Made by a program: the position numbers and the translations under genes
Notes under the pieces: model-generated
The model's input: only the letters and a program-made list of their open reading frames with translations
Databases searched by the model: none
What the model was told of the DNA's origin: nothing
Origin: Ramazzottius varieornatus
Lineage: Eukaryota > Animalia > Tardigrada
Direction: 5' to 3'
Length of the DNA stretch: 64,000 nucleotides
Assembly (NCBI GenBank): GCA_001949185.1
Contig: BDGG01000013.1
Coordinates: 434,001-498,000, forward strand
Part shown: piece by piece, positions 15,602 through 56,798 of the stretch
Position numbering within the stretch: the first letter of the stretch is position 1
Layout of the letters: the number at the start of each line of letters is the position of its first letter

Positions 15602-17217
15602 GGTCGGCGGTCTGGTTCCTATCGTGACGTCTCGTGTAGGCTTCGAGAGATCTAGAGTATAATGGTGTGAGACACATGTGACAGGTTGTCAGGCCGGAGA
15701 ACCAGCAAAATGGCCCCAATGAAACAACATTACGCCATCAGCGTTAAAGAATGAGCCCGAGAGAAGGAGAACGAGGCGAGCCCATCAGTGTTATGGAAAG
15801 CCGACAGGGGGAAAATATATGCGCGGCAGGAAATGCTGACATGTCATCATAAATCATTCTGGGGAAACTGCGAAGCTCAAACTCATTACGTGTGATAAAT
15901 TTCAAACGACGCATTTGTCAAATTGAACTTGACAGGACACAATAACCGCCTGCCGTCCGAGCTCCACTCCTGTGGCAATCATCTCCATCATTTTCCCAGC
16001 CGTATAACTCCCACACAGTACATACCATCGTAAAGTACTCGTGCTTCGCCACACAGCTCCACCGAAGTAAGGAAAAATCCTTGCGACTCTTGGGTATGTA
16101 TTAAAGGCTCAAATGCTTCAAAACCACGAGTTTCACGGCTGAAAGCTTAAACCTTGCCGCAGAAGTCAGCTGGACGACCTGAGAGACAGAATCTTCGTGC
16201 CGTTTTTCCACGATATTTCCTGCACTCGCACACGACCGTGATCGAGCCGTAAAATAGCTGCCATGAGGAGAAACGGACTAAAGCAAAAAGCCGGGTGCGA
16301 TCGCCAGTGTCCATGGCTGGTTGTTGACTCGGTTGATCAATGAGCGCGAACCGCGATGCTACGGATCCCGCCATCGCAGCTCATCAGACCTTGATCATCA
16401 GGCACATGACATCGCCGGCGCACGTCAACGCACTTCTGATAATTACTGACCATTGATCGATACAGTGACGGATCTATGATACAGTGGATGCCGCAAGAGT
16501 GATTGACACCCGGTCAGCATTCTTCCTTAATTACCACCCATTGTCAAGATAGCTCACCTACGACAATGCCGCCATCTCATCATTGTGGACCGACCTACCA
16601 GAACCGAACATATATACCAGCCATCAATGTATTCCTTCTATCCTCCTGCAATGGTCCGTTTACGCGATTGCTGATCATTTCAGCTGGCTTTAAGCGTAAA
16701 AACCAGGACGACTCCGATAAATTTGCACCTCTTTTTGCGTCAAAGAGAAACAAAATTTCACCTTCACCTTATAATTGCACCATGAAAGAATCTGTAATAA
16801 ACAGTAATATTGCTGAAGACTTTGTCTGACGTTGACTTTAATCAAAAACGTAAGTAGCTAAGCCAGGGGTACCAGACCGTGGCACCATCTACTGTACGGC
16901 AAGCCCGCTGCTCGGTGCATCCGGTATCCACATAATTTTTTGCAGGCTCCATCCAGAAACGGATTTTTACAAGGTCCCCTACGAATCTTGTAGTGTGATT
17001 TCTGCATTGATCCGCTTTCCGCAATATTTCCGAAATGGAGCGGTGATGAGCAACGTTTTGGACAATAGTTAAAGGTTCTTTACCGTGTCACTTGGTGTCA
17101 ACTTCAGATATGGATGTGTCTTGAAGAGCTTTAAATGCCCATGTTGTTAGAGAGGTGAAAACCCACCCTGTCCGGGAAGTGCCAAATAGCAAAAACCCCC
17201 GTCACATGTGTTCTTCG

Positions 17218-18051
17218 TAATGATGAGCATTACATTTTACATTACATTATCTTACATTACAATTACACTTGTACACGACACTTAAATCACGGGGAAGTTG
17301 TAATGTAAATGTAAAATGTAATTACAACTTTTACCTGCCAGAATCTGCGGTATTTTTGGGTGTTTTGCCGCCAGAAATCTAAAAGTCGGCTGACTTACGC
17401 GGAAAATGTCAGAAACTTCCTGAGTATGGTCATTTCTCAACCGTATTTTCATCTTTGTCTGGAAGACAATCACCAAGATCTATATTCTACGCAAACATAG
17501 ACATAGCTGGCTCGTCGTTTTCGTCGCTCCTTGTCACTTTTAGGCGTTACAAACCGCTCGGTCTGTAAAATGTAAACTAGTGTAAAATGTAATTACACTT
17601 TTACAATTACACTATTTTACATTAGCTAGACTCAAAGCTGGCGTTTACCTAAATTTGGGCCGTTTGTTTAGCTAAACGGACGTTGGGATTGATCAAGCTC
17701 GCCAAACAGACCCCGCCCACTCAGTTTAGCTAAACGGATTGAAATCGTCCATTTAGCTAAACGGAGCCTGTTAATCGCCTCCGTGATGTCGGCATCGTGC
17801 GCGAAAATGTTCCGCTCAAAAAACTCCCTTCAATTTTTCTGACGTCACAGCCTTTTCTACGTACTTTGGTATGTTAGACTGTGATTGATTATTTCGGTAC
17901 TCAGACCTGAAATTTCAATTGATTACGTGCTTGGTTGATTTACTTAAACAAACGCCGTTTTTAAACGACTACTTTTACGTAAACGCCAGCTTTGAGTCTA
18001 GCTACTACACTTTCCATTACACGGACCATCTGCGTGTAATGCTCATCATTA
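17218..18051 (+). mobile_element. hAT-like MITE copy 1 (more diverged; interrupted by a nested MITE)
   Basis: 16-bp TIR TAATGATGAGCATTAC; TTACA-rich subterminal repeats; colinear with copies at 18901 and 49160. Confidence 0.9.
17623..18004. mobile_element. Nested MITE (~380 bp) with 26-bp perfect inverted ends
   Basis: TAGCTAGACTCAAAGCTGGCGTTTAC (17623-17648) and GTAAACGCCAGCTTTGAGTCTAGCTA (17979-18004); internal TTTAGCTAAACGG repeats; absent from the other two host-MITE copies. Confidence 0.9.
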
Positions 18052-18308
18052 ACGTTAACCGTACCTCTGTGACCGTACGCTGTACTCAAATATTCTGGCC
18101 ATCCGAAAACTGTAGCTACATCGGCAGTCCGGGAGCTACAGAATACGGCTAGCTTGGGTACCCGATGTACAGAATAGGAACAGTGTACTCCACCCGTACA
18201 GTCGGGAGCGTTTATGCGCTGGGAGGCCATCAAAAAGCCTACTATTATGTAGTTATAAGGGGTGGCTATCTCAACAACCGAAATTTGGGGTGGATAACTC
18301 AACAACAA

Positions 18309-18900
18309 AATACCGCAGAATGAGACTAGCCGATAACCCTTCTGAACGTTATTGGTTAGCGTAAGTTTTGAAGTGTAACATTTTCTTTTGTCAGGAGAAA
18401 ACAACGCGACCAACGTCACGGTTGTCTTTGACCATGAAGTGAGGGAAGAATTTTCCAAAGACACACCACCCGATTCACACAAAGTACTCTACTATGTACT
18501 GGCAGTTGTACCAGCAGAGCAGTCGATCAACTCCACTTTCGTCAAGAGAAGATTTCGTCATGAACTTCCACACGAGAATTTCCTCTTTGGTTTCGACATG
18601 GATGATGACGACAATAATCAAAGCTCTAGCGCACTGTAACCAGCATCAGCAAGATCAAGCTCTTTCTAACTTCTTGTGTTTCGTCGCGGAACCTCTCATG
18701 CCAATGCAACCCTCGCCGAAACCCTAAGGTTCAATGCGATCGGTTCAATTGTTTGCCTGTCATGGTTAGTCTGTCAGGAATTCAATGGACGAGGAAAATA
18801 ATGAAGCTTCCAGATATGGCAAACACAGTACGGCAAAACGACGCGCCGGTTGATTCGGGTTTCCGGCCCAGGTTGTTCCTTCATTGGATAGTGTCTCGCA
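18309..18900 (+). pseudogene. Captured copy of the last intron (minus its GT), last coding exon (18395-18639) and 3' flank of the mucin-like gene
   Basis: Reverse complement of 49597-50188 (592 bp; only one mismatch noticed). Ends in GTCTCGCA, the reverse complement of the TGCGAGAC TSD at the donor site. Confidence 0.92.
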
Positions 18901-19337
18901 TAATGATGAGCATTACATTTTACATTACAATTACACTTGTACACGACATTACAACCACGGGGAAGTTGTAATGTAAATGTAAAATGTAATTACAACTTTT
19001 ACCTGCCAGAATCTGCGGTATTTTTGGGTGTTTTGCCGCCAGAAATCTAAAAGTCGGCTGACTTACGCGGGAAAATGTCAGAAACTTCCTGAGTATGGTC
19101 ATTTTGCAACCGTATTTTCATCTTTGTCTGGAAGACAATTACTAAGATCTATATTCTACGCAAACATAGACATAGCTGGTTCGTCGTTTTCGTCGCTCCT
19201 TGTCACTTTTAGGCGTTACAAACCGCTCGGTCTGTAAAATGTAAACTGGTGTAAAATGTAATTACACTTTTACAATTACACTATTTTACATTACACTTTA
19301 CATTACACGGACCATCTGCGTGGAATGCTCATCATTA
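18901..19337 (+). mobile_element. hAT-like MITE copy 2 (437 bp)
   Basis: Same length as, and near-identical to, the reverse complement of 49160-49596 (about 3 mismatches noticed). Confidence 0.93.
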
Positions 19338-22089
19338 GTTCTTCGAGAACTCGTGGCCGGTCCGGACCTGCCAACATCATCTCTCACCCGATGGATACCG
19401 CCGGCGGGATCCTCATCGGTGACGGTTCAAATATGCAACCAGGCCCCGAGTAACGGAATCTCCACCTTGACACACACTAACTTCGGGAAGGTGCCGTTTA
19501 AGCAGGAGGTAGAAAGGATTCACGAAGACGTCAACTACCAAATTAGTGAGGCGACCGCTCAAAAAATCCCAGACTTCATCGACCGGAAGGACACAAATCT
19601 GGACATGTCCCTATTCTTGTTCAGCGCGGTAAGCTTCAAGCCAGTGGGAAGATCCTTTCTATCCGGACGCGACCCGAGAGGGACAGCTCACGATGTCCGA
19701 TGGGACAACCAAAGAGGTTTTCTCCAACGGCGAGCAGAGAAGGATATGGAGTCTGGGCAAAGTTCCTCAGAAGTCTGGGGTCACGGCGTAGAGGCATAGT
19801 CGAGGAAATTTAGGCAGGGGACGGGACAGCCCGGGCGTAAGGGTCAGCGCTTGCACGGGTCGGCTAGGGCCGGAAATGGTGGAAAAATGACCACCCTAAA
19901 TGGCTCTGATATACAAGAGGTGGAAATTCCCATCCTGGAAGAACGGGGTGGGAACGGCAGGATGGAAAAGATGGGAGCAAGTGGCAGGGTGAGATTACCG
20001 GTATTCCGTGACATCAAACCCGGAAATCACGAGTTGTAAAAGTTTCTGGTGTCTGTTTCAAGGGTTCTCAATTAATTACCCAATTTGTAACCCATAGAGT
20101 AGTATTCCTTTCAATCTCGGCCACACACCGTCAGCCAGTGCGATCCCGGCATGCCACGCGGAGCATTCCATGACATCAGTGCATCGAAACTAATAGACGA
20201 CATCAGTCCGACGGTTACAGTTACTGGGATTATCTAGGGCGGTGCTGCAATGTATAAAATGCATACCGGATCAAAAATTTGATTACGAGTTGTACCACAG
20301 TATGCCTCTGTGTATTACTAATCGATAAACTATTCAAAATACTCAGCCGGTGTGGCTGCATTTTGAACACAGTACAGTAACCCACGGCGATTCAAAAATA
20401 CTGAATCCTTTTTAAGTTTTCACCCCTCCGATTACGCAAGGACAGTCGCAGTATTTCCGAAGTCATATTCCTGTTCAGCAGCAGTTACTAGAGAAGGTTC
20501 AATGCAGGAAGATACACATCATCGCAACCAAGTAGCTATGGGTATCACCGCTTCGTGACTCGACACCGACCGCGGCTTCCATTTACTGGTCGCATCAGAA
20601 GCTCCGCTTCAGTACTGGCGCGACGTCGGGTCACTCTGTTAATAAGATCGACATTAGCATAAAGCCATCGTACTGTCTTACATCCATTTGGCTGGTGGTT
20701 CGTGGTCAATTTTCAGTTTTGGTCGGTCTAGGAAACCACCGGGCGCAAATGCGGGAAAAATTAGATGTAGTCCGATGTATTGACCCGATGGAACACGTTG
20801 GATGCGATGGGAAACGGTGTAAAGTACTTTTCTGATCCTGAGGCTGGCAGTGTTGCCTGTGCTTGCTGATGTAGAGCAGTTCGTCGTGCAGCTCTTAAGA
20901 CGAATCTGAACTGCGGATTGTACTACCTGGTCAAACAGTTCACTATACAACCAGTGACGACTCGGGACTGGCTTACCGTGTCAAGCATTATCCCATTCCT
21001 TTTTTGTTAAGTGTATTTGAGAAACCCGCTTTGATACCCGCCGGTACGGCGGCCCATCGAAGGTTTTTTTTTTGTTTGTTCAGAGCCCTGCAACATGCAG
21101 TACGTTCTGTACTGCACCACATTTTACTGCAATGCAGTGTAGTTGCAGTCGCCGAAATGGTGAGAAATGGAGTTGCTGTTTTGAAAAGGGGAACACCATT
21201 CGCCGCATTATACTGTTGTTGCCTCAAAAACAGTGGCAAAATCTTTCTGCTGGTCGGACTGTACCATTTTTCGTTTAAATCTCCGTGAAACATCCACGTT
21301 CGCGATGTATTTGGCATGTATATCCGTTTCCATGCAAAAATTCTGAATCTTTAAATGCGGTTCAGTGCAGTTGCAGTTCGGAGGATAGCCGAAAAATGCA
21401 GATGCAGTGCAGTTGCAGATTCAATTGAGGTATGGACTTACTGTATTCATTTTAGAAAGGAACAAAGCTGCGGCTGTGCTTGAAGGTGGAAGTACCACTA
21501 AGTACAGATGAGGGCTGACAGAGAGAAGGAGAAGACTATTCGCTGTGTAACTGTAACGAGATATTGCAGTTCTCAAAACTCTTCCTCTTCTTCTGCAGAG
21601 TAATTAAATTCTCTGCCGTTCTACAGAGCGTAGATTGTATATTGTAATGTGATACGTTACGTTGGTCTCATGGTGTTGACGGAAAGAAGTTTCGTTAACC
21701 TCAGATCTTGAATGGACTAACGAATCAAATCAGTAACTGGAAAAATTCACAGTTTTTGTGTCATTAAATTATCCACCCCAAGTAAAAAAGCAATCGGTCA
21801 ATCAGGTGTAGTGGAAATTTTGATATAGGGTTTACTGTATTCTCTGCGGAAATGGTTGTACGTCACTGATATCTGGTTCACTAGAGTGTTAGCGTAGCTA
21901 TTACACAAAGCCAATGGCGTCAGATCTTGGCGTATTTACGGACAGCTTTAGAAGCCGTTTTATGGAGTCAAACTACAGTAAGAGACAGCTTACAGAGAAA
22001 ACTGACGTCACACGACAGCTGAGACAGAATGGTTAACACGGTAAGCCTTGAAACTCTAGCAGATAAAATTCAGAATAAACAGAAGACAA

Positions 22090-23559
22090 CTAAAACTCGT
22101 CTGTATCAAAACTTATGAGATCGCCCACTATGCCCATCACTGAAGAATGATCCGAAGCAACATTCACCGTCTCAGGTTCGAACGCATCTTGGAATTTCTG
22201 GTCGACCATTTTACATTTGTGGAAGCAGTTAAAAATGGCGGAAGGCTTTACGCTCTTCCAAGCCTCCATAGCCCAGTCGACAGCATCAAACACCGTGAGC
22301 CCTTTCACGAAGTCTTCCACACCATTGATCACTGGGAGTTCTTCAAAAAACTCTTTGAAAAAGATGTTTTTTAAAATAATCTTTAAAACTCTTGATTATT
22401 CCAGCATCTAACAGCTGAGCTCGAGCAGTTCAATTCGGGGGGAAGAAGTGCAACGTGACATTCGAGCGGGACGAAGCTTCATGCGCGATAAAGTTGTCCA
22501 CAACCAAGAGAACATGGCGATCTTGCTTGACCATTTCCGCATTCAACCAGTCTAACCACGAGTTAAAGATTGCGGTGGTCATCCAAGCCGTGCTGTTATG
22601 ATAGTAGGAAAATCCATACTTATCTACCGTGACATCATGAACAGCATTCTTTTCAAACGCCCGAGGTCGCTCTTCTGTACCGATCACACAGATTACGAAC
22701 TTCTCACCGGCTGCAGAACAAAGAAGGAAGATAGTGATTCTGTCTTTAGCGATTCTGACGCCTGTTTTCTGCCATCTTCCAATGATGAGCGACTTCACAC
22801 CGAAATTTCTCCAAAATAAACTGGCCTCGTCAGCGTTCAGCAAGTTTCGTGGATCTACGTTCATTAGGACTTCAGGCAAATCAACGGTGAACCAGTTCTC
22901 CAGAGCTACCAGGTCCTTACTCGACTCTTCACCTATGCACAAGACCCAAGCTTTACTATCTAATCAGTCGAAGTGTACAAGTTAAACGTACACAAGTCAA
23001 ACCAAAAATGTTTCCTCATACCATGCAAAGTTTTCATGCAATGTCGTGTCTCTTCTTGAACTTTTCCATTCACCCTTGACTTCCTCTGAAACTTTCGAGC
23101 TTGAGTCTCGACGCAACAATGGTGGCCACGTTTGTTAGAAATACAGGTCTTACAGGTATTCGCCGCTTACGGACCCATTTGAGAAATTTCAAAACCCCTT
23201 CATCCACTTCCGGATACTCCAACTTGATGACTGCTTTCTTTCCCTTTCTGACACTGACTTCTCCTGTCTTCAATGCTGTCGCAGTCTTATGTCGTTCTTT
23301 GTATATTCTCCGAATACTGGATTCGCTCAAGTCGTACATGTCGGCCAAATCTCCGGCTTTAAACTACACAACAAAAAAGGGAACGATACAAATAACCAGC
23401 TACATTATTGAAGAATAAACGTAATACACTGCAGAACAAAATTACCCCATGATCCATCTTGTAAATTATCTCTGCACGACGCTGAAGAATAGTCTGGAGA
23501 ACAGCAGGTGCTATCGGCCGACGATCCTGGTTAGGTGGCCGATTCTTCAGTTTTCCCAT
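22090..23559 (-). pseudogene. pogo/Tigger (CENP-B-like) DDD transposase pseudogene with two spliceosomal introns
   Basis: HTH (LADMYDLSESSIRRIYK), CENP-B HTH (YPEVDEGVLKFLKWVRKRRIPV...FRGSQG*), and DDE_1 core NADE...VVDNF...PPN*TARAQLLDAGII (DD29D spacing). Introns 23445-23364 and 23021-22933 restore continuity. Stops at 23070 and 22430; 1-bp frameshift near 23037. Confidence 0.88.
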
Positions 23560-48397: not shown

Positions 48398-49159
48398 TTT
48401 GGTGCAGGTAAGAGTAATGGCGGACGATGAGGATGCCGAGTTATGGTGGAACACTGACAACTGTCGACACTGAGGTGACCAGCTTCTCGCTTGTCGTGTT
48501 TTGTTCGATCGCCTAATTGGTAATCATCCAGGAAGTCTGGCTTGAAGAGATGGATATCTGCTACGAGTACAACTTTGGACTTAGACGATCCACAGTTTTT
48601 TGTCGTCCGTTATTGACATAGCGACAGCAATGGCTCCGAACTCGAGCTGCACAACGTGTATTTGCAGTGTGATCTATCCACAAGCCGCAGCAACAGAAAA
48701 CCACAGACGTTAACTGTGGGCGTGGTGAGACGTACTGAAAGATGGCTATCCGGATCGACCTTTAACTTTCCTTTGTAACGGTCTAAAGTTCAGTTTGTAA
48801 GTCCGCTGTTTGACGGGATTTACAGTATTATTAGCACTATATACTTCAGAGTGCCGATCGTTTCGCTAGTGTGTGTCCGAATATGTGCCGTGGACCATAT
48901 GTAATCGCAGGTTTCGATCTCGTCACCGTTACAGGTACAGTTTGTGCATGAGCACAGCGCCTCCTGTCCGTCATCGTCGTCTTGTGGCCAAATCAACACC
49001 ACAGTTCACCGTCAGAAGGTGGGCTGGAACAGCGGTTTATCTGCCCCGCATCCCTCCAAGCCCGCCAGACAGGGGAGGTGCCCCGGCATGGAGGTTTTAT
49101 GCTAACAAATCATCGGGCAAAGCTGATTGCTGATTTAGCCAGACACTGTCCTGCGAGAC

Positions 49160-49596
49160 TAATGATGAGCATTTCACGCAGATGGTCCGTGTAATGTAAA
49201 GTGTAATGTAAAATAGTGTAATTGCAAGAGTGTAATTACATTTTACACCAGTTTACATTTTACAGACCGAGCGGTTTGTAACGCCTAAAAGTGACAAGGA
49301 GCGACGAAAACGACGAACCAGCTATGTCTATGTTTGCGTAGAATATAGATCTTAGTAATTGTCTTCCAGACAAAGATGAAAATACGGTTGCAAAATGACC
49401 ATACTCAGGAAGTTTCTGACATTTTCCCGCGTAAGTCAGCCGACTTTTAGATTTCTGGCGGCAAAACACCCAAAAATACCGCAGATTCTGGCAGGTAAAA
49501 GTTGTAATTACATTTTACATTTACATTACAACTTCCCCGTGGTTGTAATGTCGTGTACAAGTGTAATTGTAATGTAAAATGTAATGCTCATCATTA
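49160..49596 (-). mobile_element. hAT-like MITE copy 3 (437 bp) with intact 8-bp TSD, downstream of the mucin-like gene
   Basis: TIR TAATGATGAGCATT; TSD TGCGAGAC at 49152-49159 and 49597-49604. Confidence 0.95.
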
Positions 49597-49857
49597 TGCG
49601 AGACACTATCCAATGAAGGAACAACCTGGGCCGGAAACCCGAATCAACCGGCGCGTCGTTTTGCCGTACTGTGTTTGCCATATCTGGAAGCTTCATTATT
49701 TTCCTCGTCCATTGAATTCCTGACAGACTAACCATGACAGGCAAACAATTGAACCGATCGCATTGAACCTTAGGGTTTCGGCGAGGGTTGCATTGGCATG
49801 AGAGGTTCCGCGACGAAACACAAGAAGTTAGAAAGAGCTTGATCTTGCTGATGCTGG

Positions 49858-52800
49858 TTACAGTGCGCTAGAGCTTTGATTATTGTCGTCATCATCCATG
49901 TCGAAACCAAAGAGGAAATTCTCGTGTGGAAGTTCATGACGAAATCTTCTCTTGACGAAAGTGGAGTTGATCGACTGCTCTGCTGGTACAACTGCCAGTA
50001 CATAGTAGAGTACTTTGTGTGAATCGGGTGGTGTGTCTTTGGAAAATTCTTCCCTCACTTCATGGTCAAAGACAACCGTGACGTTGGTCGCGTTGTTTTC
50101 TCCTGACAAAAGAAAATGTTACACTTCAAAACTTACGCTAATCAATAACGTTCAGAAGGGTTATCGGCTAGTCTCATTCTGCGGTATTACCGGAGAGAAT
50201 TCGCGTCCAGGTTGTTGCCATTAGGTTCAAATAGTCATCCCGGTCTTTGGTGTTGTTATAAACTAGCCAGATGTAATCGGACAAAACGAACCCGGAAGGC
50301 AAAGGTGGCGCCAGTAATGCTTCTTTCAGCGTTGCCTGAAAGAAACACACTGTTTCAATTGAGCTCCAGCGATGCCTGGCCCACTCTACAACGTACACTG
50401 GACGAATTGGCGGTATAGTCGAAATGGGTCAAAATGTGTGTCGGCTGCAAGTTGGATAAGCTGTTCTGGGAGCTTGAGATGGACATTCCAGGTAGCAAGT
50501 TCTCGAATTGCGCCCGGAGTAGCGGTATATCCACATGCGACTGATTGGTCTGAATAATAACCACGTAGGAGATATCGTGGATTTGTTTCAACGTCGAAGT
50601 TCCCAGGGCTAAACTGAGGTCGCGGTTGACCACGTCGCTGTACAGTGTTATATCGACACTGGTGGCATTTGAACCTGAAGATAATGACCGTTGTTGCTAT
50701 AGATGGGAACTTTTTTCCTGTGTACTTGGAGCTTGATATTGATATGGATCAACATACCTAAAACACGTTGCCATAAGTTTTGGATGACTTGAAGCATGTT
50801 CACGAGTTCTTGAGGCGTGGAGTAGCTGACCGAGAGCCCAGCCGGGATGACGATGAGGTCTTCGCGACGGTCGTTTGCACTGACGGAAGAGTTGGCATAA
50901 GTGAGAAGCTGGGTGTGGTTGGTCTCAGGAGAGGACAGGTACTGGTGGAAAGCGCTCTTTAAAACGTCAATGTTCCATCCGCGTTGGTGAGTCAGTATAA
51001 GCACCATGTAACTCAACCGGTGGGAACCAGTGGTGGCATTTGCCACGTCAAAGTATGGCCGGATCTGCACATCGACTGCGTTTTTCCCTATGTTAAAATA
51101 ATTTTGTATCCCGAGTTTTCTAGGAAACCTCTCTGGGGTTGACTTTGAAATCGATTTTTACCCATGAAGTCGATCCACATTTTGGTCAGTGCTTCGAAGA
51201 CGGCGTCTCGTTCGGCATCAGTTGAGTAATTTGCTTCGATGACATTGTCGAAGACGTAAGATTCTATTGAATCCGGCTGTATCGTTTGAAGCGCTATTTC
51301 TGTTATGTTTGAATGCGGAGAATTTCTTTGCGCTGTCAGTTCTGTGACAGAGTTGCTGCTTGTATCCAAGATGACTGATGGCAAATTAGCCTTCACGAGT
51401 CGCTGGTTGAACTCGGCTGTGATCTTTTCCTGATCGTAGTTAGTAGCGTTGGTAATGACGAAAACAGTATAGGTTACGTAATGGACCTTCGTGCCGGAAG
51501 TGTCAAGGCCGCCATCCACGTCAATGGTAGAATCGTTTGAGACGACTAAGCGTACGTCGATCTGGTTAAAGCCTACAACACACAGTAGCCGTGACGGGGA
51601 TGTAGCTCAGATGGTAGAGCGCCCGCTTAGCATGCGGGAGGTAGGGGGATCGATACCCTCCATCTCCAGTTTTTCCACTTTTTCAGCTGTGTTTTCTTTA
51701 ATACGAAATAACGATAGACTTACCGAAAACATCCTTCCAGACATTGAGCACGGATTCCAGCACAGTTGAACGTTCACTTTCAGATGTGTAGTTGAGCAGA
51801 ATAGTGTTGGGTAAAGCGAAGCCGAGCAACGGTCCGGTCGAATCTCTTTTCGGCTACAAAAAGGATAAGGGAAATGACTGCACGACTCATACACATCCAC
51901 CCAGGCTGAGGTATGAATAGATTCGAAATTGTAGAGGCCTTGTTAATTTTTTATAGTCAATTTGTTTATATTGGTACATCGACGTACCGTGGTAAAGTTC
52001 AATGAGGAGCTGGAGTTGTTCGGTACTTCATGAACGAATTGTGAACGTTCGGGGATCGTCAGGATGGTCAGACCCGGCATAGCAATTCTCGACACCAGAC
52101 GGTCTGCTGTGGCTCTCAAACCATCTACGTCAAGCTCCAGCGGACTTGTTGATTTGACGAGGACAATGTAAAAGAGATCGATCAGCTGCTCGTTACCGGC
52201 AAGAGGGCCGGCGTGCGGAGCTTCACGGTAGATCGACACCTGGATATCCTGTGCTTGTCTCCCTATAAGGACGAAATACCTCATGTTGACAACTTCCTCT
52301 TTGGAGAATATAACAGTTTCTTGCCTACCGACTACGTCCATCCAGATGATTTGAAGGGCTTTCAGCAGCTGCTCTCTTTCGGTCGAAGTTGCGTCGGCAC
52401 TTATGGAGACGGAGTCGAGAATGACGTTATTATGAACGCTAGCATCACCAATGGCACCACCGGTAGCAGAGGCAGGTCTCACAGTGGTGGTGGTGGTGGT
52501 GGCTCGTCGAGTCAGTAGTTCTAATGTGCGGGTATTGTTAGCCAGCAGCTGCAAGAAGCGCACCCTGGCAGCTTCCACGTTGATGTCGGGAAGTTTCCCC
52601 AGTACCAGTACGACGTAGTCGATATTCGTTACTGGGATTTCCGATGAGTTGACTGGTCTGATGGTGGTGTTGTGGTACACTGCAAGCTTGACGTCTTCCG
52701 TCTCGTTACCTGAAAGAAACAAACGCCCGAATGAAAATTTCACTGTCGACATCAACTGGCGCACAGGGAAAGCCTACTGTAAGCCTAGACATACCGAAAG

Positions 52801-55339: not shown

Positions 55340-56213
55340 CTGCAACAGAAAATCCAGCGTGGTGATTGATACGTTTCGCATTTTCAGCAGTAATGATGTG
55401 AATTTACAGAGACGTTTTACCAGATACGTATTGGGTCCTTTAGCCCACGATATTATCAATCTTTATGGCTTGATTTACCTGTAACCCTTCCTTGTGCGAT
55501 GAAACGTGCTCCCGAAACACACGAAATCTGGAACACGCGAAAAACTTGCAGTAGACAACATAGTTGAGTAGACCACAAAGTTCAGAGAATAATTACCGCT
55601 AAAAATATGAATAACGCGAAGAGAAGCATGACGAGTGATCTCAATCGAATCCGGTCGCGATACTGTAGAAGCGCAATACGGCGTTCCTTGGAACAAATTC
55701 GAAAATCGAAGGATCGAAGAACAATAAAAATCGGTAGATAGCTGATAGTTGTCAGAAAGTAAAACTATCAGTCATTGCGGAAGAAAGTGAAGGTATCCTA
55801 TCGACATTTGATGGCGATGACATCCGACTTCTCCCCTGCGGCGATCGCTGACGAGAGCAAAAGATGCGCAAGTTCATTGTCACGTTATTGGTTTGCTGCT
55901 CAGTTGAATCTTTAGTAACGTGACACAGCCTTGAAGTGTATCCTGTTCAATGAGCAATGAAACTTTCAACGCTCAGGTAACTGTCGGCCCGCGAACTTTG
56001 CGCTTCCTTTTTGTTGGTCCGCTGAAGACATTCAACCTCGTTTTTAACTGACAAACCATCGATTCCGCCCATTTTCGGGTGACACGTAAGACTGAGATAC
56101 GTATAGTTTTTAATGGGATCGACAATAACGTAGGACCGTCCATCGATAAAGTTAACAACGAAGAGCTCGTCGCAAGAATTATTGTTGCTCCGTCAATCGA
56201 AAAAGTGAAAAAC

Positions 56214-56286
56214 TGGAGATGGAGGGTATCGATCCCCCTACCTCCCGCATGCTAAGCGGGCGCTCTACCATCTGAGCTACATCCCC
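56214..56286 (-). tRNA. tRNA-Ala (AGC), identical to 51596-51668
   Basis: Exact reverse complement; followed by GTTTTTCACTTTTT Pol III terminator. Confidence 0.97.
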
Positions 56287-56798
56287 ACACATAACAGTAC
56301 GGGCAGAGACTATCAATATCATCTTAACGCCACGTACTGCGATACATGTCCGTGCAACAGTTCGTGCAACAGGAAGTTCGTAATTGTTATTCTTCGAGCA
56401 ACAGTACACAAAATACTTATCGTTGTTCTGCGACCGTGAAGCCCTAATGAATTCATGGACCGTAAGGTACATCCACACCAAAATTCGAGGTCGATTTTCC
56501 ATTACCCTGCGAAAATGCAGTGCACATTCAGTTGTGAGTCCTCGGTACTATCCACTATCAAACCAAGCTTACCAAAAAACAAGACTATAAAAATAAACGC
56601 TAAAACAACACACATAAACTTTTCGCTGTTTATAGACAGTGAAGCAAAATACCGAATAGTACGTGTGCATCAGCCACTTCGTCAGAACTCGAACTAGAAA
56701 GGGCAGTAGCACAGATACTGTTCAATAATTTTATGAACTAACTCAGTATTCTTCTACTCCGGAAACTGAGATAAATTTGGTAGTTTGTGGTAGGTGGC

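Follow-up and report, generated by a model that had tools for sequence, protein, structure and literature searches.

P-element-induced gap repair in Drosophila copies non-homologous DNA from ectopic templates, and abortive gap repair in maize creates Ds and deleted MuDR elements. In these cases an excision gap is repaired by copying, with repeated strand invasion and a preference for cis templates, and aborted synthesis is followed by end joining. P-element gap filling is cited in a survey that has already reported animal Pack-hAT elements formed by gap filling (Tan et al. 2021, Nat Commun, PMC8277862), in which hAT is the commonest carrier (208/370) and whose main text does not mention tardigrades. 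The Pack-TIR elements of that survey, Pack-hAT included, consist of transposon ends and a target-site duplication around host DNA, have a parent in cis, are single copy, and carry a short filler or microhomology at the breakpoint, with double-strand break repair and template switching as the proposed route. Plant Pack-MULE and Pack-CACTA elements similarly place terminal inverted repeats around gene fragments and can give rise to chimeric transcripts; they are often multicopy and captured in trans, by a mechanism that is unsettled. A further related class, the Composite Insertions of maize Ac/fAc, arises by reversed-ends transposition and re-replication (Zhang et al. 2014, eLife, PMC4270019). 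The pick-up of gene fragments by transposons is still argued mainly from indirect statistics.

Here, we describe a composite unit from the tardigrade Ramazzottius varieornatus whose segments are all traceable, with two surviving donors that retain their own target-site duplications, copies of those duplications inside the unit, a filler junction, and a terminus unlike that of its donor. Whereas the P-element, Ds and MuDR cases are laboratory or genetic-screen events, this composite is a fixed natural product with both ectopic templates still identifiable. On its most likely origin it illustrates cleanly, in nature, a gene-fragment capture route that was already known, and no new mechanism; the novelty claimed in a first-pass annotation of this DNA was overstated, as gap-filled Pack-hAT elements had already been published from animals (PMC8277862).

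The composite occupies positions 17219-19337 of the window (the whole stretch of 64,000 nucleotides that we analyzed) and is a two-ended unit of 2119 bp, built of two halves and bounded by a single 8-bp duplication. Its parts are as follows.

17211-17218, plus strand: left target-site duplication GTTCTTCG of the composite, from the letters and from the flank table (L042 left flank).
17219-17287, plus strand: left tip of MITE copy 1, a long-form terminus that is not from X, with indels and substitutions relative to X.
17288-18052, plus strand: remainder of MITE copy 1, from X, 98.9% identical to L002 (C13:405.7-406.6 kb).
17627-18000, plus strand: nested 374-bp MITE within copy 1; X has the same nested insertion.
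18053-18060, plus strand: copied right target-site duplication ACGTTAAC of X, present on both sides at X and only on this inner side in the composite.
18061-18306, plus strand: 246 bp from the right flank of X, 98% identical to C13:406564-406817.
18307-18308, plus strand: 2-nt filler AA, between the end of X homology and the start of Y homology.
18309-18394, plus strand: copy of the last intron, 86 of 88 bases with the GT alone missing; acceptor cag at 18392-18394, mismatch to the donor at 18355.
18395-18639, plus strand: copy of the last coding exon, 81 codons and a stop, with no mismatch to 50102-49858.
18640-18892, plus strand: parent-gene 3' flank, copied without change from 49857-49605 (minus strand).
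18893-18900, plus strand: copied target-site duplication of Y, GTCTCGCA, the reverse complement of TGCGAGAC, from the sequence and the flank table.
18901-19337, plus strand: MITE copy 2, from Y; its last 69 bp contain three of the four mismatches between the right half and Y.
19338-19345, plus strand: right target-site duplication GTTCTTCG, from the letters and the flank table.

The first-pass annotation had placed GTTCTTCG to the left of copy 1 and to the right of copy 2, and both the letters and the flank table agree. The inner flanks differ from it, ACGTTAAC at copy 1 and GTCTCGCA at copy 2, and the probability of an 8-bp match by chance is 1.5e-5. The outer ends carry intact 17-bp terminal inverted repeats. 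The extent proposed earlier for the unit (17218-19337) holds once its start is corrected to 17219, and the nested MITE in copy 1 is an addition to it. The left half (17219-18306) consists of a MITE with its nested MITE, the right ACGTTAAC duplication and 246 bp of the flank of locus X, while the right half (18309-19337) is an inverted copy of locus Y (window 49160-50188) with 4 mismatches in 1029 bp, and contains, from a mucin-like gene, 86 of the 88 bases of the last intron together with the final exon and the 3' flank, followed by the donor duplication and a MITE. The halves meet at the AA filler in unique DNA.

We consider it probable that the composite arose when a resident MITE was repaired by template switching to X and Y, and of the two mechanisms put forward in the first-pass annotation the evidence favors this one, template switching in gap repair, over joint mobilization of two MITE ends. 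It is favored because there is one outer 8-bp duplication, yet the inner MITE ends carry the duplications of other loci. We infer a resident element, a break and the following order of events. An ordinary hAT-type MITE copy would first have inserted at the GTTCTTCG site, creating that duplication, and would later have been excised or broken. The two broken ends would then have been repaired through copying (synthesis-dependent strand annealing), with each growing strand leaving its proper template and re-invading a different copy of that MITE elsewhere on the chromosome. For the left end this would have been X, 44 kb upstream, and for the right end Y, 30 kb downstream. Each strand would have copied about 1 kb, passing from the donor MITE into the donor target-site duplication and then into the adjacent donor DNA, and the new strands, having no homology to each other, would have been joined end to end with the 2-nt filler. 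The product would keep its outer transposon ends and enclose a repeat fragment along with the end of the mucin-like gene (intron, last exon and 3' flank).

The features of gap repair found at this locus are two donors in cis (one 44 kb and the other 30 kb off, within a single contig), the AA filler and a divergent left tip, the right tip being a weaker case. Location of both donors in cis within 45 kb matches the cis bias of gap filling (PMC8277862), and a junction of X flank to Y flank in unique DNA with an AA filler is an end-joining signature after aborted synthesis. This junction also bears on whether the unit is real, as a chimeric clone or a repeat-induced mis-join might create a false duplicate in a 2016 Sanger and Illumina assembly (PMC5034306) of a region whose three MITE copies are 96-100% alike. 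We regard such an artifact as very improbable: the critical position, 18307, lies outside any repeat, a mis-join yields no matching 8-bp duplication around the unit, and both halves differ from their donors, the left one by 11 substitutions and the divergent left tip from X, and the right one by 4 mismatches from Y. The sequencing reported for the assembly (PMC5034306), which combined Sanger reads with 3.5-kb insert pairs and 160x Illumina coverage, would moreover make a false join across a 437-bp repeat unlikely.

Locus Y was identified from the right half. Positions 18309-19339 match 49158-50188 in inverted orientation over 1031 nt, with mismatches only at 18355, 19269, 19272 and 19323, so that the earlier description of copy 2 and its 592-bp flank as a near-identical inverted duplicate of copy 3 and its flank is borne out base by base. 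The donor consists of two parts.

49160-49596, minus strand: donor Y, MITE copy 3 (L021), with its own duplication TGCGAGAC at 49152-49159 and 49597-49604.
49597-50188, minus strand: Y flank as read from the sequence, with the 3' flank, the last exon (50102-49858) and the last intron (from 50188).

The presence of TGCGAGAC on both sides of copy 3 had been noted before, as had the role of the 49-50 kb region as donor of the right half, and here the direction of copying is clear: the flank is co-linear on into the upstream exons, which makes Y the parent. More generally, X and Y are the parents because each has its duplication on both sides and continues into its own flanks. The parent gene, a mucin-like gene with multiple repeats, lies on the minus strand and extends to ~55.3 kb. 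The copied acceptor (cag|G at 18394/18395) leads into an 81-codon reading frame, and in a library-wide search the last-exon peptide has three homologues (E 4e-8 to 3e-6, 40-47% identity, 20 invariant columns), in keeping with the annotated acceptor and intact final coding exon. BLASTP of this exon against another repeat unit of the parent gene gave a non-significant E of 3.4, and with an HMM built from seven repeat units the last exon ranked joint first among the non-training fragments, tied with one upstream fragment, at E 1.3. Searching the parent gene model exon by exon, we found no Pfam family in any large exon. It is improbable, more so than the transposase readings discussed below, that the gene-derived half came from cDNA of a lariat-3'-exon splicing intermediate, an idea suggested by the copy beginning at the third intron base.

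Clustering of three of the four right-half mismatches in the last 69 bp has p = 0.001 (0.017 corrected), but it is weak evidence that the right tip belongs to a distinct lineage. Two of the three tip mismatches are private to Y, and at 19323 copy 2 and Y are both off the family consensus; the common state at 19323 hints at shared descent.

Locus X lies outside the window. The first-pass annotation had reported a 257-bp stretch found nowhere else in the window and had predicted a genomic source beside a MITE flanked by ACGTTAAC; 18053-18308 is indeed absent from the rest of the window, and its one further genomic occurrence (C13:406564-406817, 98% identity) adjoins just such a MITE, with ACGTTAAC on both sides. 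Copy 1 shares all X-lineage marker sites and the nested insertion with L002. The right flank of X is a fragment of a dispersed repeat, with partial matches of 74-93% at seven other loci. Divergence from X is concentrated at the left tip, where 17219-17287 differs by 2 indels (15 bp and 4 bp) and 3 substitutions in 69 bp. These 5-6 changes compare with 11 substitutions in the next 1019 bp (p = 0.002-0.0004), and the best match to the tip elsewhere in the genome is just 90% identical. This segment we interpret as left over from the resident MITE, or else as made by further template switches. The tip sits in a slippage-prone repeat and is itself a mosaic, with a G at 17271 that is common to copy 2 and Y and differs from X.

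Tips unlike those of the donors count against any model in which the donor ends themselves are moved or re-replicated, as identity would then be expected. One such model is alternative transposition, in which a transposase pairs the left end of X with the right end of Y and inserts them at GTTCTTCG in S phase, after which the elements and their flanks are re-replicated, the forks abort and the breaks are joined, a route shown for maize Ac/fAc. The layout of the composite is identical to that of maize Composite Insertions, with two elements that each bring their own flank, an end-joined inner junction and one 8-bp duplication (PMC4270019). The MITE family is apparently of recent activity, and one contig carries X, Y and, between them, the target. 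However, the left terminus is not the donor's own, as it is in maize, and differs from the X tip by two indels and several substitutions. The geometry is also wrong: the left tip of X (C13:405748) and the right tip of Y (C13:483160) both have the element body to their right, leaving the donor ends in direct orientation and 77 kb apart, whereas the maize reaction uses ends that face each other, 822 bp apart. Maize Composite Insertions are also larger, at 10-23 kb against 2.1 kb here. We therefore hold this route, and with it the joint mobilization of two MITE ends proposed in the first-pass annotation, to be improbable. To our knowledge, alternative transposition with re-replication has been shown to date in maize only.

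Repair of a resident MITE also accommodates the copy number of the composite. By the formal criteria of Tan et al. 2021 the composite is a Pack-TIR (Pack-hAT) element, with TIRs at both ends, a target-site duplication, and a cargo whose parent can be identified (18309-18900 and 49597-50188 differ by a single base), and the Pack-type structure recognized earlier stands; a genuine coding exon is part of its host cargo. It is not a multicopy Pack element: apart from the donor and the composite, the assembly has no full copy of either the X-side or the Y-side cargo. Nothing here points to movement as a unit, and the earlier statement that it behaves as one is unsupported or overstated. The assembly also has no paralog of the site, whether empty or filled; the sequence to the right is unique, and to the left the only repeat is a dispersed one of 170 bp that stops short of the duplication. 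A composite built elsewhere by any route might still have been cut and pasted as one unit, with GTTCTTCG made on arrival, and the intact outer repeats and perfect duplication around the whole unit fit such a jump, as does the single copy, given that cut-and-paste vacates the old site. We find this doubtful in view of the missing second copy of either cargo, the fact that the extra step explains no feature, and the finding that single-copy animal Pack elements are mostly transposition-independent (PMC8277862). Overall, it is unlikely that a transposase, beyond repair alone, made or moved the unit, whether through two hAT MITE ends acting jointly or through one Pack-hAT jump; were it so, this would be the first case in a tardigrade where transposase-driven mobilization of a spliceable terminal exon could be traced.

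Template-switch repair, by comparison, is supported by the apparently recent transposase source and by the lack of a further full copy of either cargo. A single event is not assured, as the two halves have unequal interior divergence (11/1019 for the left half and X, 1/960 for the right half and Y; p = 0.006), and two successive repair events may have taken place instead of one.

Like the Pack-TIR elements of Tan et al., the composite is single copy with parents in cis and a short filler at its breakpoint; compared with plant Pack elements, its sequence lets the route of capture be followed. Unlike the Tan elements, which hold arbitrary nearby DNA, it is filled with DNA flanking two other copies of its own MITE, and since this DNA was reached through full-length donor MITEs the composite contains a pair of complete MITEs and a pair of foreign target-site duplications. 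Its donors are also more distant (30 and 44 kb, against mostly <15 kb in that survey). The locus indicates that homology among dispersed copies of one MITE can direct repair synthesis into adjacent DNA, and the outcome of such steering is an acceptor-plus-last-exon cassette between working transposon ends. To call it an exon-shuffling intermediate, as was done before, overstates what is potential only. The host is known to survive massive DNA breakage. With a breakage-tolerant host and a transposon family that looks recently active, such capture could be searched for genome-wide and perhaps provoked experimentally.

No other composite of this kind was found among 28 other copies of the MITE. 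Three candidates (L027, L050 and L054) were rejected because shifts of 2-3 bp in their ends explain the mismatched flanks, and a fourth (L023) looks like an old mutated copy. A perfect 8-bp duplication of their own flanks 17 of the 28 checked copies, X and Y included, and several more match at 6-7 of 8 positions. The 17-bp terminal inverted repeat begins TAATGATGAGCATTACA. Longer elements with the same ends have perfect 8-bp duplications too; in the longest, L058 (7.2 kb) and L063 (5.8 kb), the interiors read N. The MITE ends are 80-87% identical over about 90-106 bp to those of a 3.2-kb partner (L059:50-3248), in which a putative transposase reading frame is present in three pieces. This partner matches DUF659 (E 2.7e-7, 30.8 bits, under the 34.7 cut-off) and, at its C-terminus, Dimer_Tnp_hAT (E 0.022, reaching no curated cut-off), and its matches to the Hermes transposase are co-linear (E 0.24-0.9). 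The best Atlas clusters listed for it are all Dimer_Tnp_hAT, with a top score of 0.95, and its best ten family-bearing matches belong to one family or clan. The 8-bp duplications and these domain signals support the earlier assignment of the family as hAT-like, at the level of sequence. The 3.2-kb partners are 99-100% identical to each other and identical 978-bp derivatives occur at two sites; by these comparisons the family, or the source of its transposase, looks recently active.

The composite spans 17219–19337 and is made of two MITE-ended halves, half A (copy 1 and its flank) on the left and half B (a flank and copy 2) on the right. The MITE copies within the window that concern us are:

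17219–18052: MITE copy 1, complete but split by a 374-bp MITE nested at 17627–18000
18901–19337: MITE copy 2
49160–49596: MITE copy 3, part of the donor of half B (Y, 49160–50188), with TGCGAGAC on either side

The outer flank of copy 1 on the left and of copy 2 on the right is GTTCTTCG, as the first-pass annotation had proposed in assigning one 8-bp duplication to the whole unit, a match with a computed chance probability of 1.5e-5. The inner flanks are ACGTTAAC for copy 1 and GTCTCGCA for copy 2. Because most family copies have a duplication of their own (perfect over 8 bp in 17 of the 28 checked, including Y and the donor of half A, X, and off by one or two bases in most of the remainder), copies 1 and 2 are exceptional, and each complements the other. 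The nested 374-bp MITE belongs to another family, has inverted repeats of ~22 bp beginning TAGACTCAAAGCTGGCGTTTAC, and occupies the same position in copy 1 and in X (L002:1075–1448), where it appears to be flanked by a target-site duplication of its own, ATTA or TTA. A ~170-bp repeat at 17035–17205, with at least 15 genome copies at 71–87% identity, stops 13 bp short of the composite's left duplication.

Both donors lie on the same contig (C13, of which the window covers 434001–498000), X 44 kb upstream and Y 30 kb downstream of the composite. A repeat search of the window recovered inverted repeat arms of 1031 nt (18309–19339 and 49158–50188), and base-by-base comparison placed mismatches solely at 18355, 19269, 19272 and 19323, bearing out the earlier reading of copy 2 and its flank as an inverted duplicate of sequence at 49–50 kb. 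Searching the whole genome (a 55,842,812-bp assembly of 200 contigs) with 18053–18308 returned a single further match, 98% identical, at C13:406564–406817. At this locus (X, L002), a MITE that contains the same nested element has ACGTTAAC on both sides and is followed by the same sequence as 18053–18308; the segment had been expected to recur in such a setting, beside a MITE with the inner-flank duplication. Half A (17288–18306) and X differ at 11 positions in 1019 bp. The X flank also has partial matches of 74–93% at seven other loci in the genome, indicating that this part of the cargo is a fragment of a repeat and is not genic.

Homology to X ends at 18306 and homology to Y starts at 18309, and the AA between the two tracts matches neither donor. 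The junction joins unique DNA to unique DNA and so is no repeat-induced join. Misassembly is unlikely, given this unique junction, the differences of A and B from their own donors, the matching duplication that frames the whole unit, and an assembly supported at this scale by Sanger reads and by pairs with 3.5-kb inserts (PMC5034306). The published Ramazzottius varieornatus assembly comprises 55.8 Mbp in 199 nuclear scaffolds plus the mitochondrial genome (N50 of 4.74 Mbp) and draws on Sanger shotgun, fosmid-end and 160x Illumina data (PMC5034306).

Three routes could yield the layout duplication–MITE–flank–flank–MITE–duplication. As any route by which donor ends are moved or re-replicated should leave outer tips equal to those of the donors, the termini are the discriminating feature. 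The left tip (17219–17287, 69 bp) has the long-form terminus found in most family members, whereas X has the short form; a second indel of 4 bp and at least three substitutions bring the total to 5–6 events in 69 bp, compared with 11 in the adjoining 1019 bp (p = 0.002–0.0004). No other genomic copy matched the left tip above 90% in a genome search. The tip is also mosaic, with a G at 17271 common to B and Y and not to X, a pattern that fits several rounds of invasion without proving them. At the opposite end, the last 69 bp contain three of the four B–Y mismatches (p = 0.001, or 0.017 when corrected for window choice); two of these three are changes private to Y, and at 19323 B has G, Y has A and the family has T. 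This clustering is weaker evidence than the left tip.

Alternative transposition, with re-replication after it, could have joined one end of X to one end of Y; the maize Composite Insertions, which arise in this way, have exactly the composite's layout (PMC4270019). However, this route predicts a left tip identical to that of X, and the reacting tips would be the left end of X (C13:405748) and the right end of Y (C13:483160), 77 kb apart as opposed to 822 bp in maize. As the element body lies to the right of both, these tips point the same way (direct orientation) instead of facing each other. The first-pass annotation had offered two routes; its joint mobilisation of two MITE ends fares poorly on these counts, and its template switching during gap repair is the one we favour.

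On this account, a resident MITE would have undergone repair synthesis, its new strands switching template to two further copies of the family. The resident MITE would have been excised or broken, and each 3’ end would first have primed on its proper template before re-invading a homologous MITE in cis. Each end would then have copied ~1 kb, through the donor MITE and out into the donor flank, and the two non-complementary tracts would have been end-joined with a 2-nt filler. There is experimental precedent for each proposed step, both in the repair of P-element gaps and in the way that Ds and deleted MuDR elements arise. Interior divergence is 1.08% between A and X and 0.10% between B and Y (p = 0.006; p = 0.07 when all four B–Y mismatches are counted), so there may have been two successive repair events, X first and Y recently. 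The composite could also have been assembled at another site and later have jumped as one unit, but a genome search found no second full copy of either cargo besides donor and composite, and nothing therefore shows mobility of the unit.

Tan et al. (2021) catalogued 370 Pack-TIRs, including 208 Pack-hAT, from 100 animal genomes, in a main text that does not mention tardigrades (PMC8277862). These animal Pack-TIRs are mostly single-copy and cis-derived and were ascribed to transposition-independent gap filling, with P-element gap filling among the work cited (PMC8277862). The cis donors of the composite agree with this bias (PMC8277862), and the composite belongs to the same kind, not to a new category. 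What is particular to it is that the template switches would have been guided by homology extending over the full length of other copies of its MITE. As two whole MITEs remain in it, together with two target-site duplications from elsewhere, its route is directly legible, which makes it well suited to teaching and gives a lead for a genome-wide scan.

The genic cargo of half B comes from a mucin-like gene on the minus strand, running from ~55.3 kb (55322) to 49.86 kb (49858). It is built of long Ser/Thr-rich runs and of an unnamed ~130-aa module (N-x-T ... h-x-Y-x-h ... F-x-x-x-L ... W-x-x-[ILV]-[LM]-G) that is present at least seven times, with introns often directly after the W..LG motif, and it matched no family in Pfam. 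Its 3’ end is organized as follows:

50191, minus: end of the penultimate exon
50190–50103, minus: last intron, 88 bp, GT..AG
50102–49858, minus: last exon, stop codon included

The gene-derived tract begins at 50188 (= 18309), the third intron base, and so contains the intron minus its GT, followed by the acceptor, the whole exon (0 mismatches), 253 bp of 3’ flank, the Y duplication and the Y MITE. That the break falls precisely two bases inside the intron may be coincidence (roughly 2–4%) or a hint about the template. Protein searches were run exon by exon, and the exon peptide has three homologues in a 1.8-billion-protein library (E 4e-8 to 3e-6, 40–47% identity). With 20 invariant columns across the set and matches extending into the same W-x-x-V-x-G module, these significant homologues indicate that the copied exon is a real coding exon. 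All three are unnamed, come from assemblies in Logan and ENA, and are the sole relatives found for the mucin-like gene. We regard exon shuffling at the composite only as a possibility. Two tRNA-Ala(AGC) genes, at 51596–51668 (plus strand; apparently within an intron of the mucin-like gene) and 56213–56287 (minus strand), account for the recurrent 'VAQMVERPLSMREVGGSIPS' pseudo-ORFs, and the minus-strand segment 47972–48460, just downstream of Y, holds a carboxylesterase-family exon (PF00135, E 1.6e-17).

The genome contains at least 40 near-full copies of the 437-bp MITE and 84 matches to its left end. Elements of 3.1–3.3 kb have the family's termini (80–87% identity to the MITE ends over ~100 bp) and perfect 8-bp duplications, and copies of this hAT-like element include:

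L059:50–3248 (G000:C2:7872649–7875847)
L061:4748–8009
L064:4936–8024

The transposase reading frame is split into three pieces. Its frames match DUF659 at E 2.7e-7, just below the curated cut-off, and the C-terminus matches Dimer_Tnp_hAT at E 0.022, likewise below threshold; matches to the Hermes transposase are weak and co-linear, and the best language-model neighbours shown are all hAT dimerisation-domain clusters (top score 0.95). Although no single protein test exceeds a curated threshold, these signals taken together with the 8-bp duplications point to a hAT family for the MITE and its 3.2-kb partner. The 3.2-kb copies are 99–100% identical to one another, and identical deletion derivatives of 977–978 bp occur at two different sites (L060, L065), suggesting very recent transposase activity. 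Further deletion derivatives of ~1.19 kb are present at L051 and L062. Two long elements of 7.2 and 5.8 kb (L058:1300–7430 and L063:2680–7780) share these hAT termini and likewise sit between perfect 8-bp duplications, with interiors that read N. Within the window, 22430–23348 on the minus strand holds a pogo/Tigger-like transposase remnant, with a DDE_1 domain at 22430–22942 (E 1.3e-19) and an ORF at 23070–23348 adjoining upstream.
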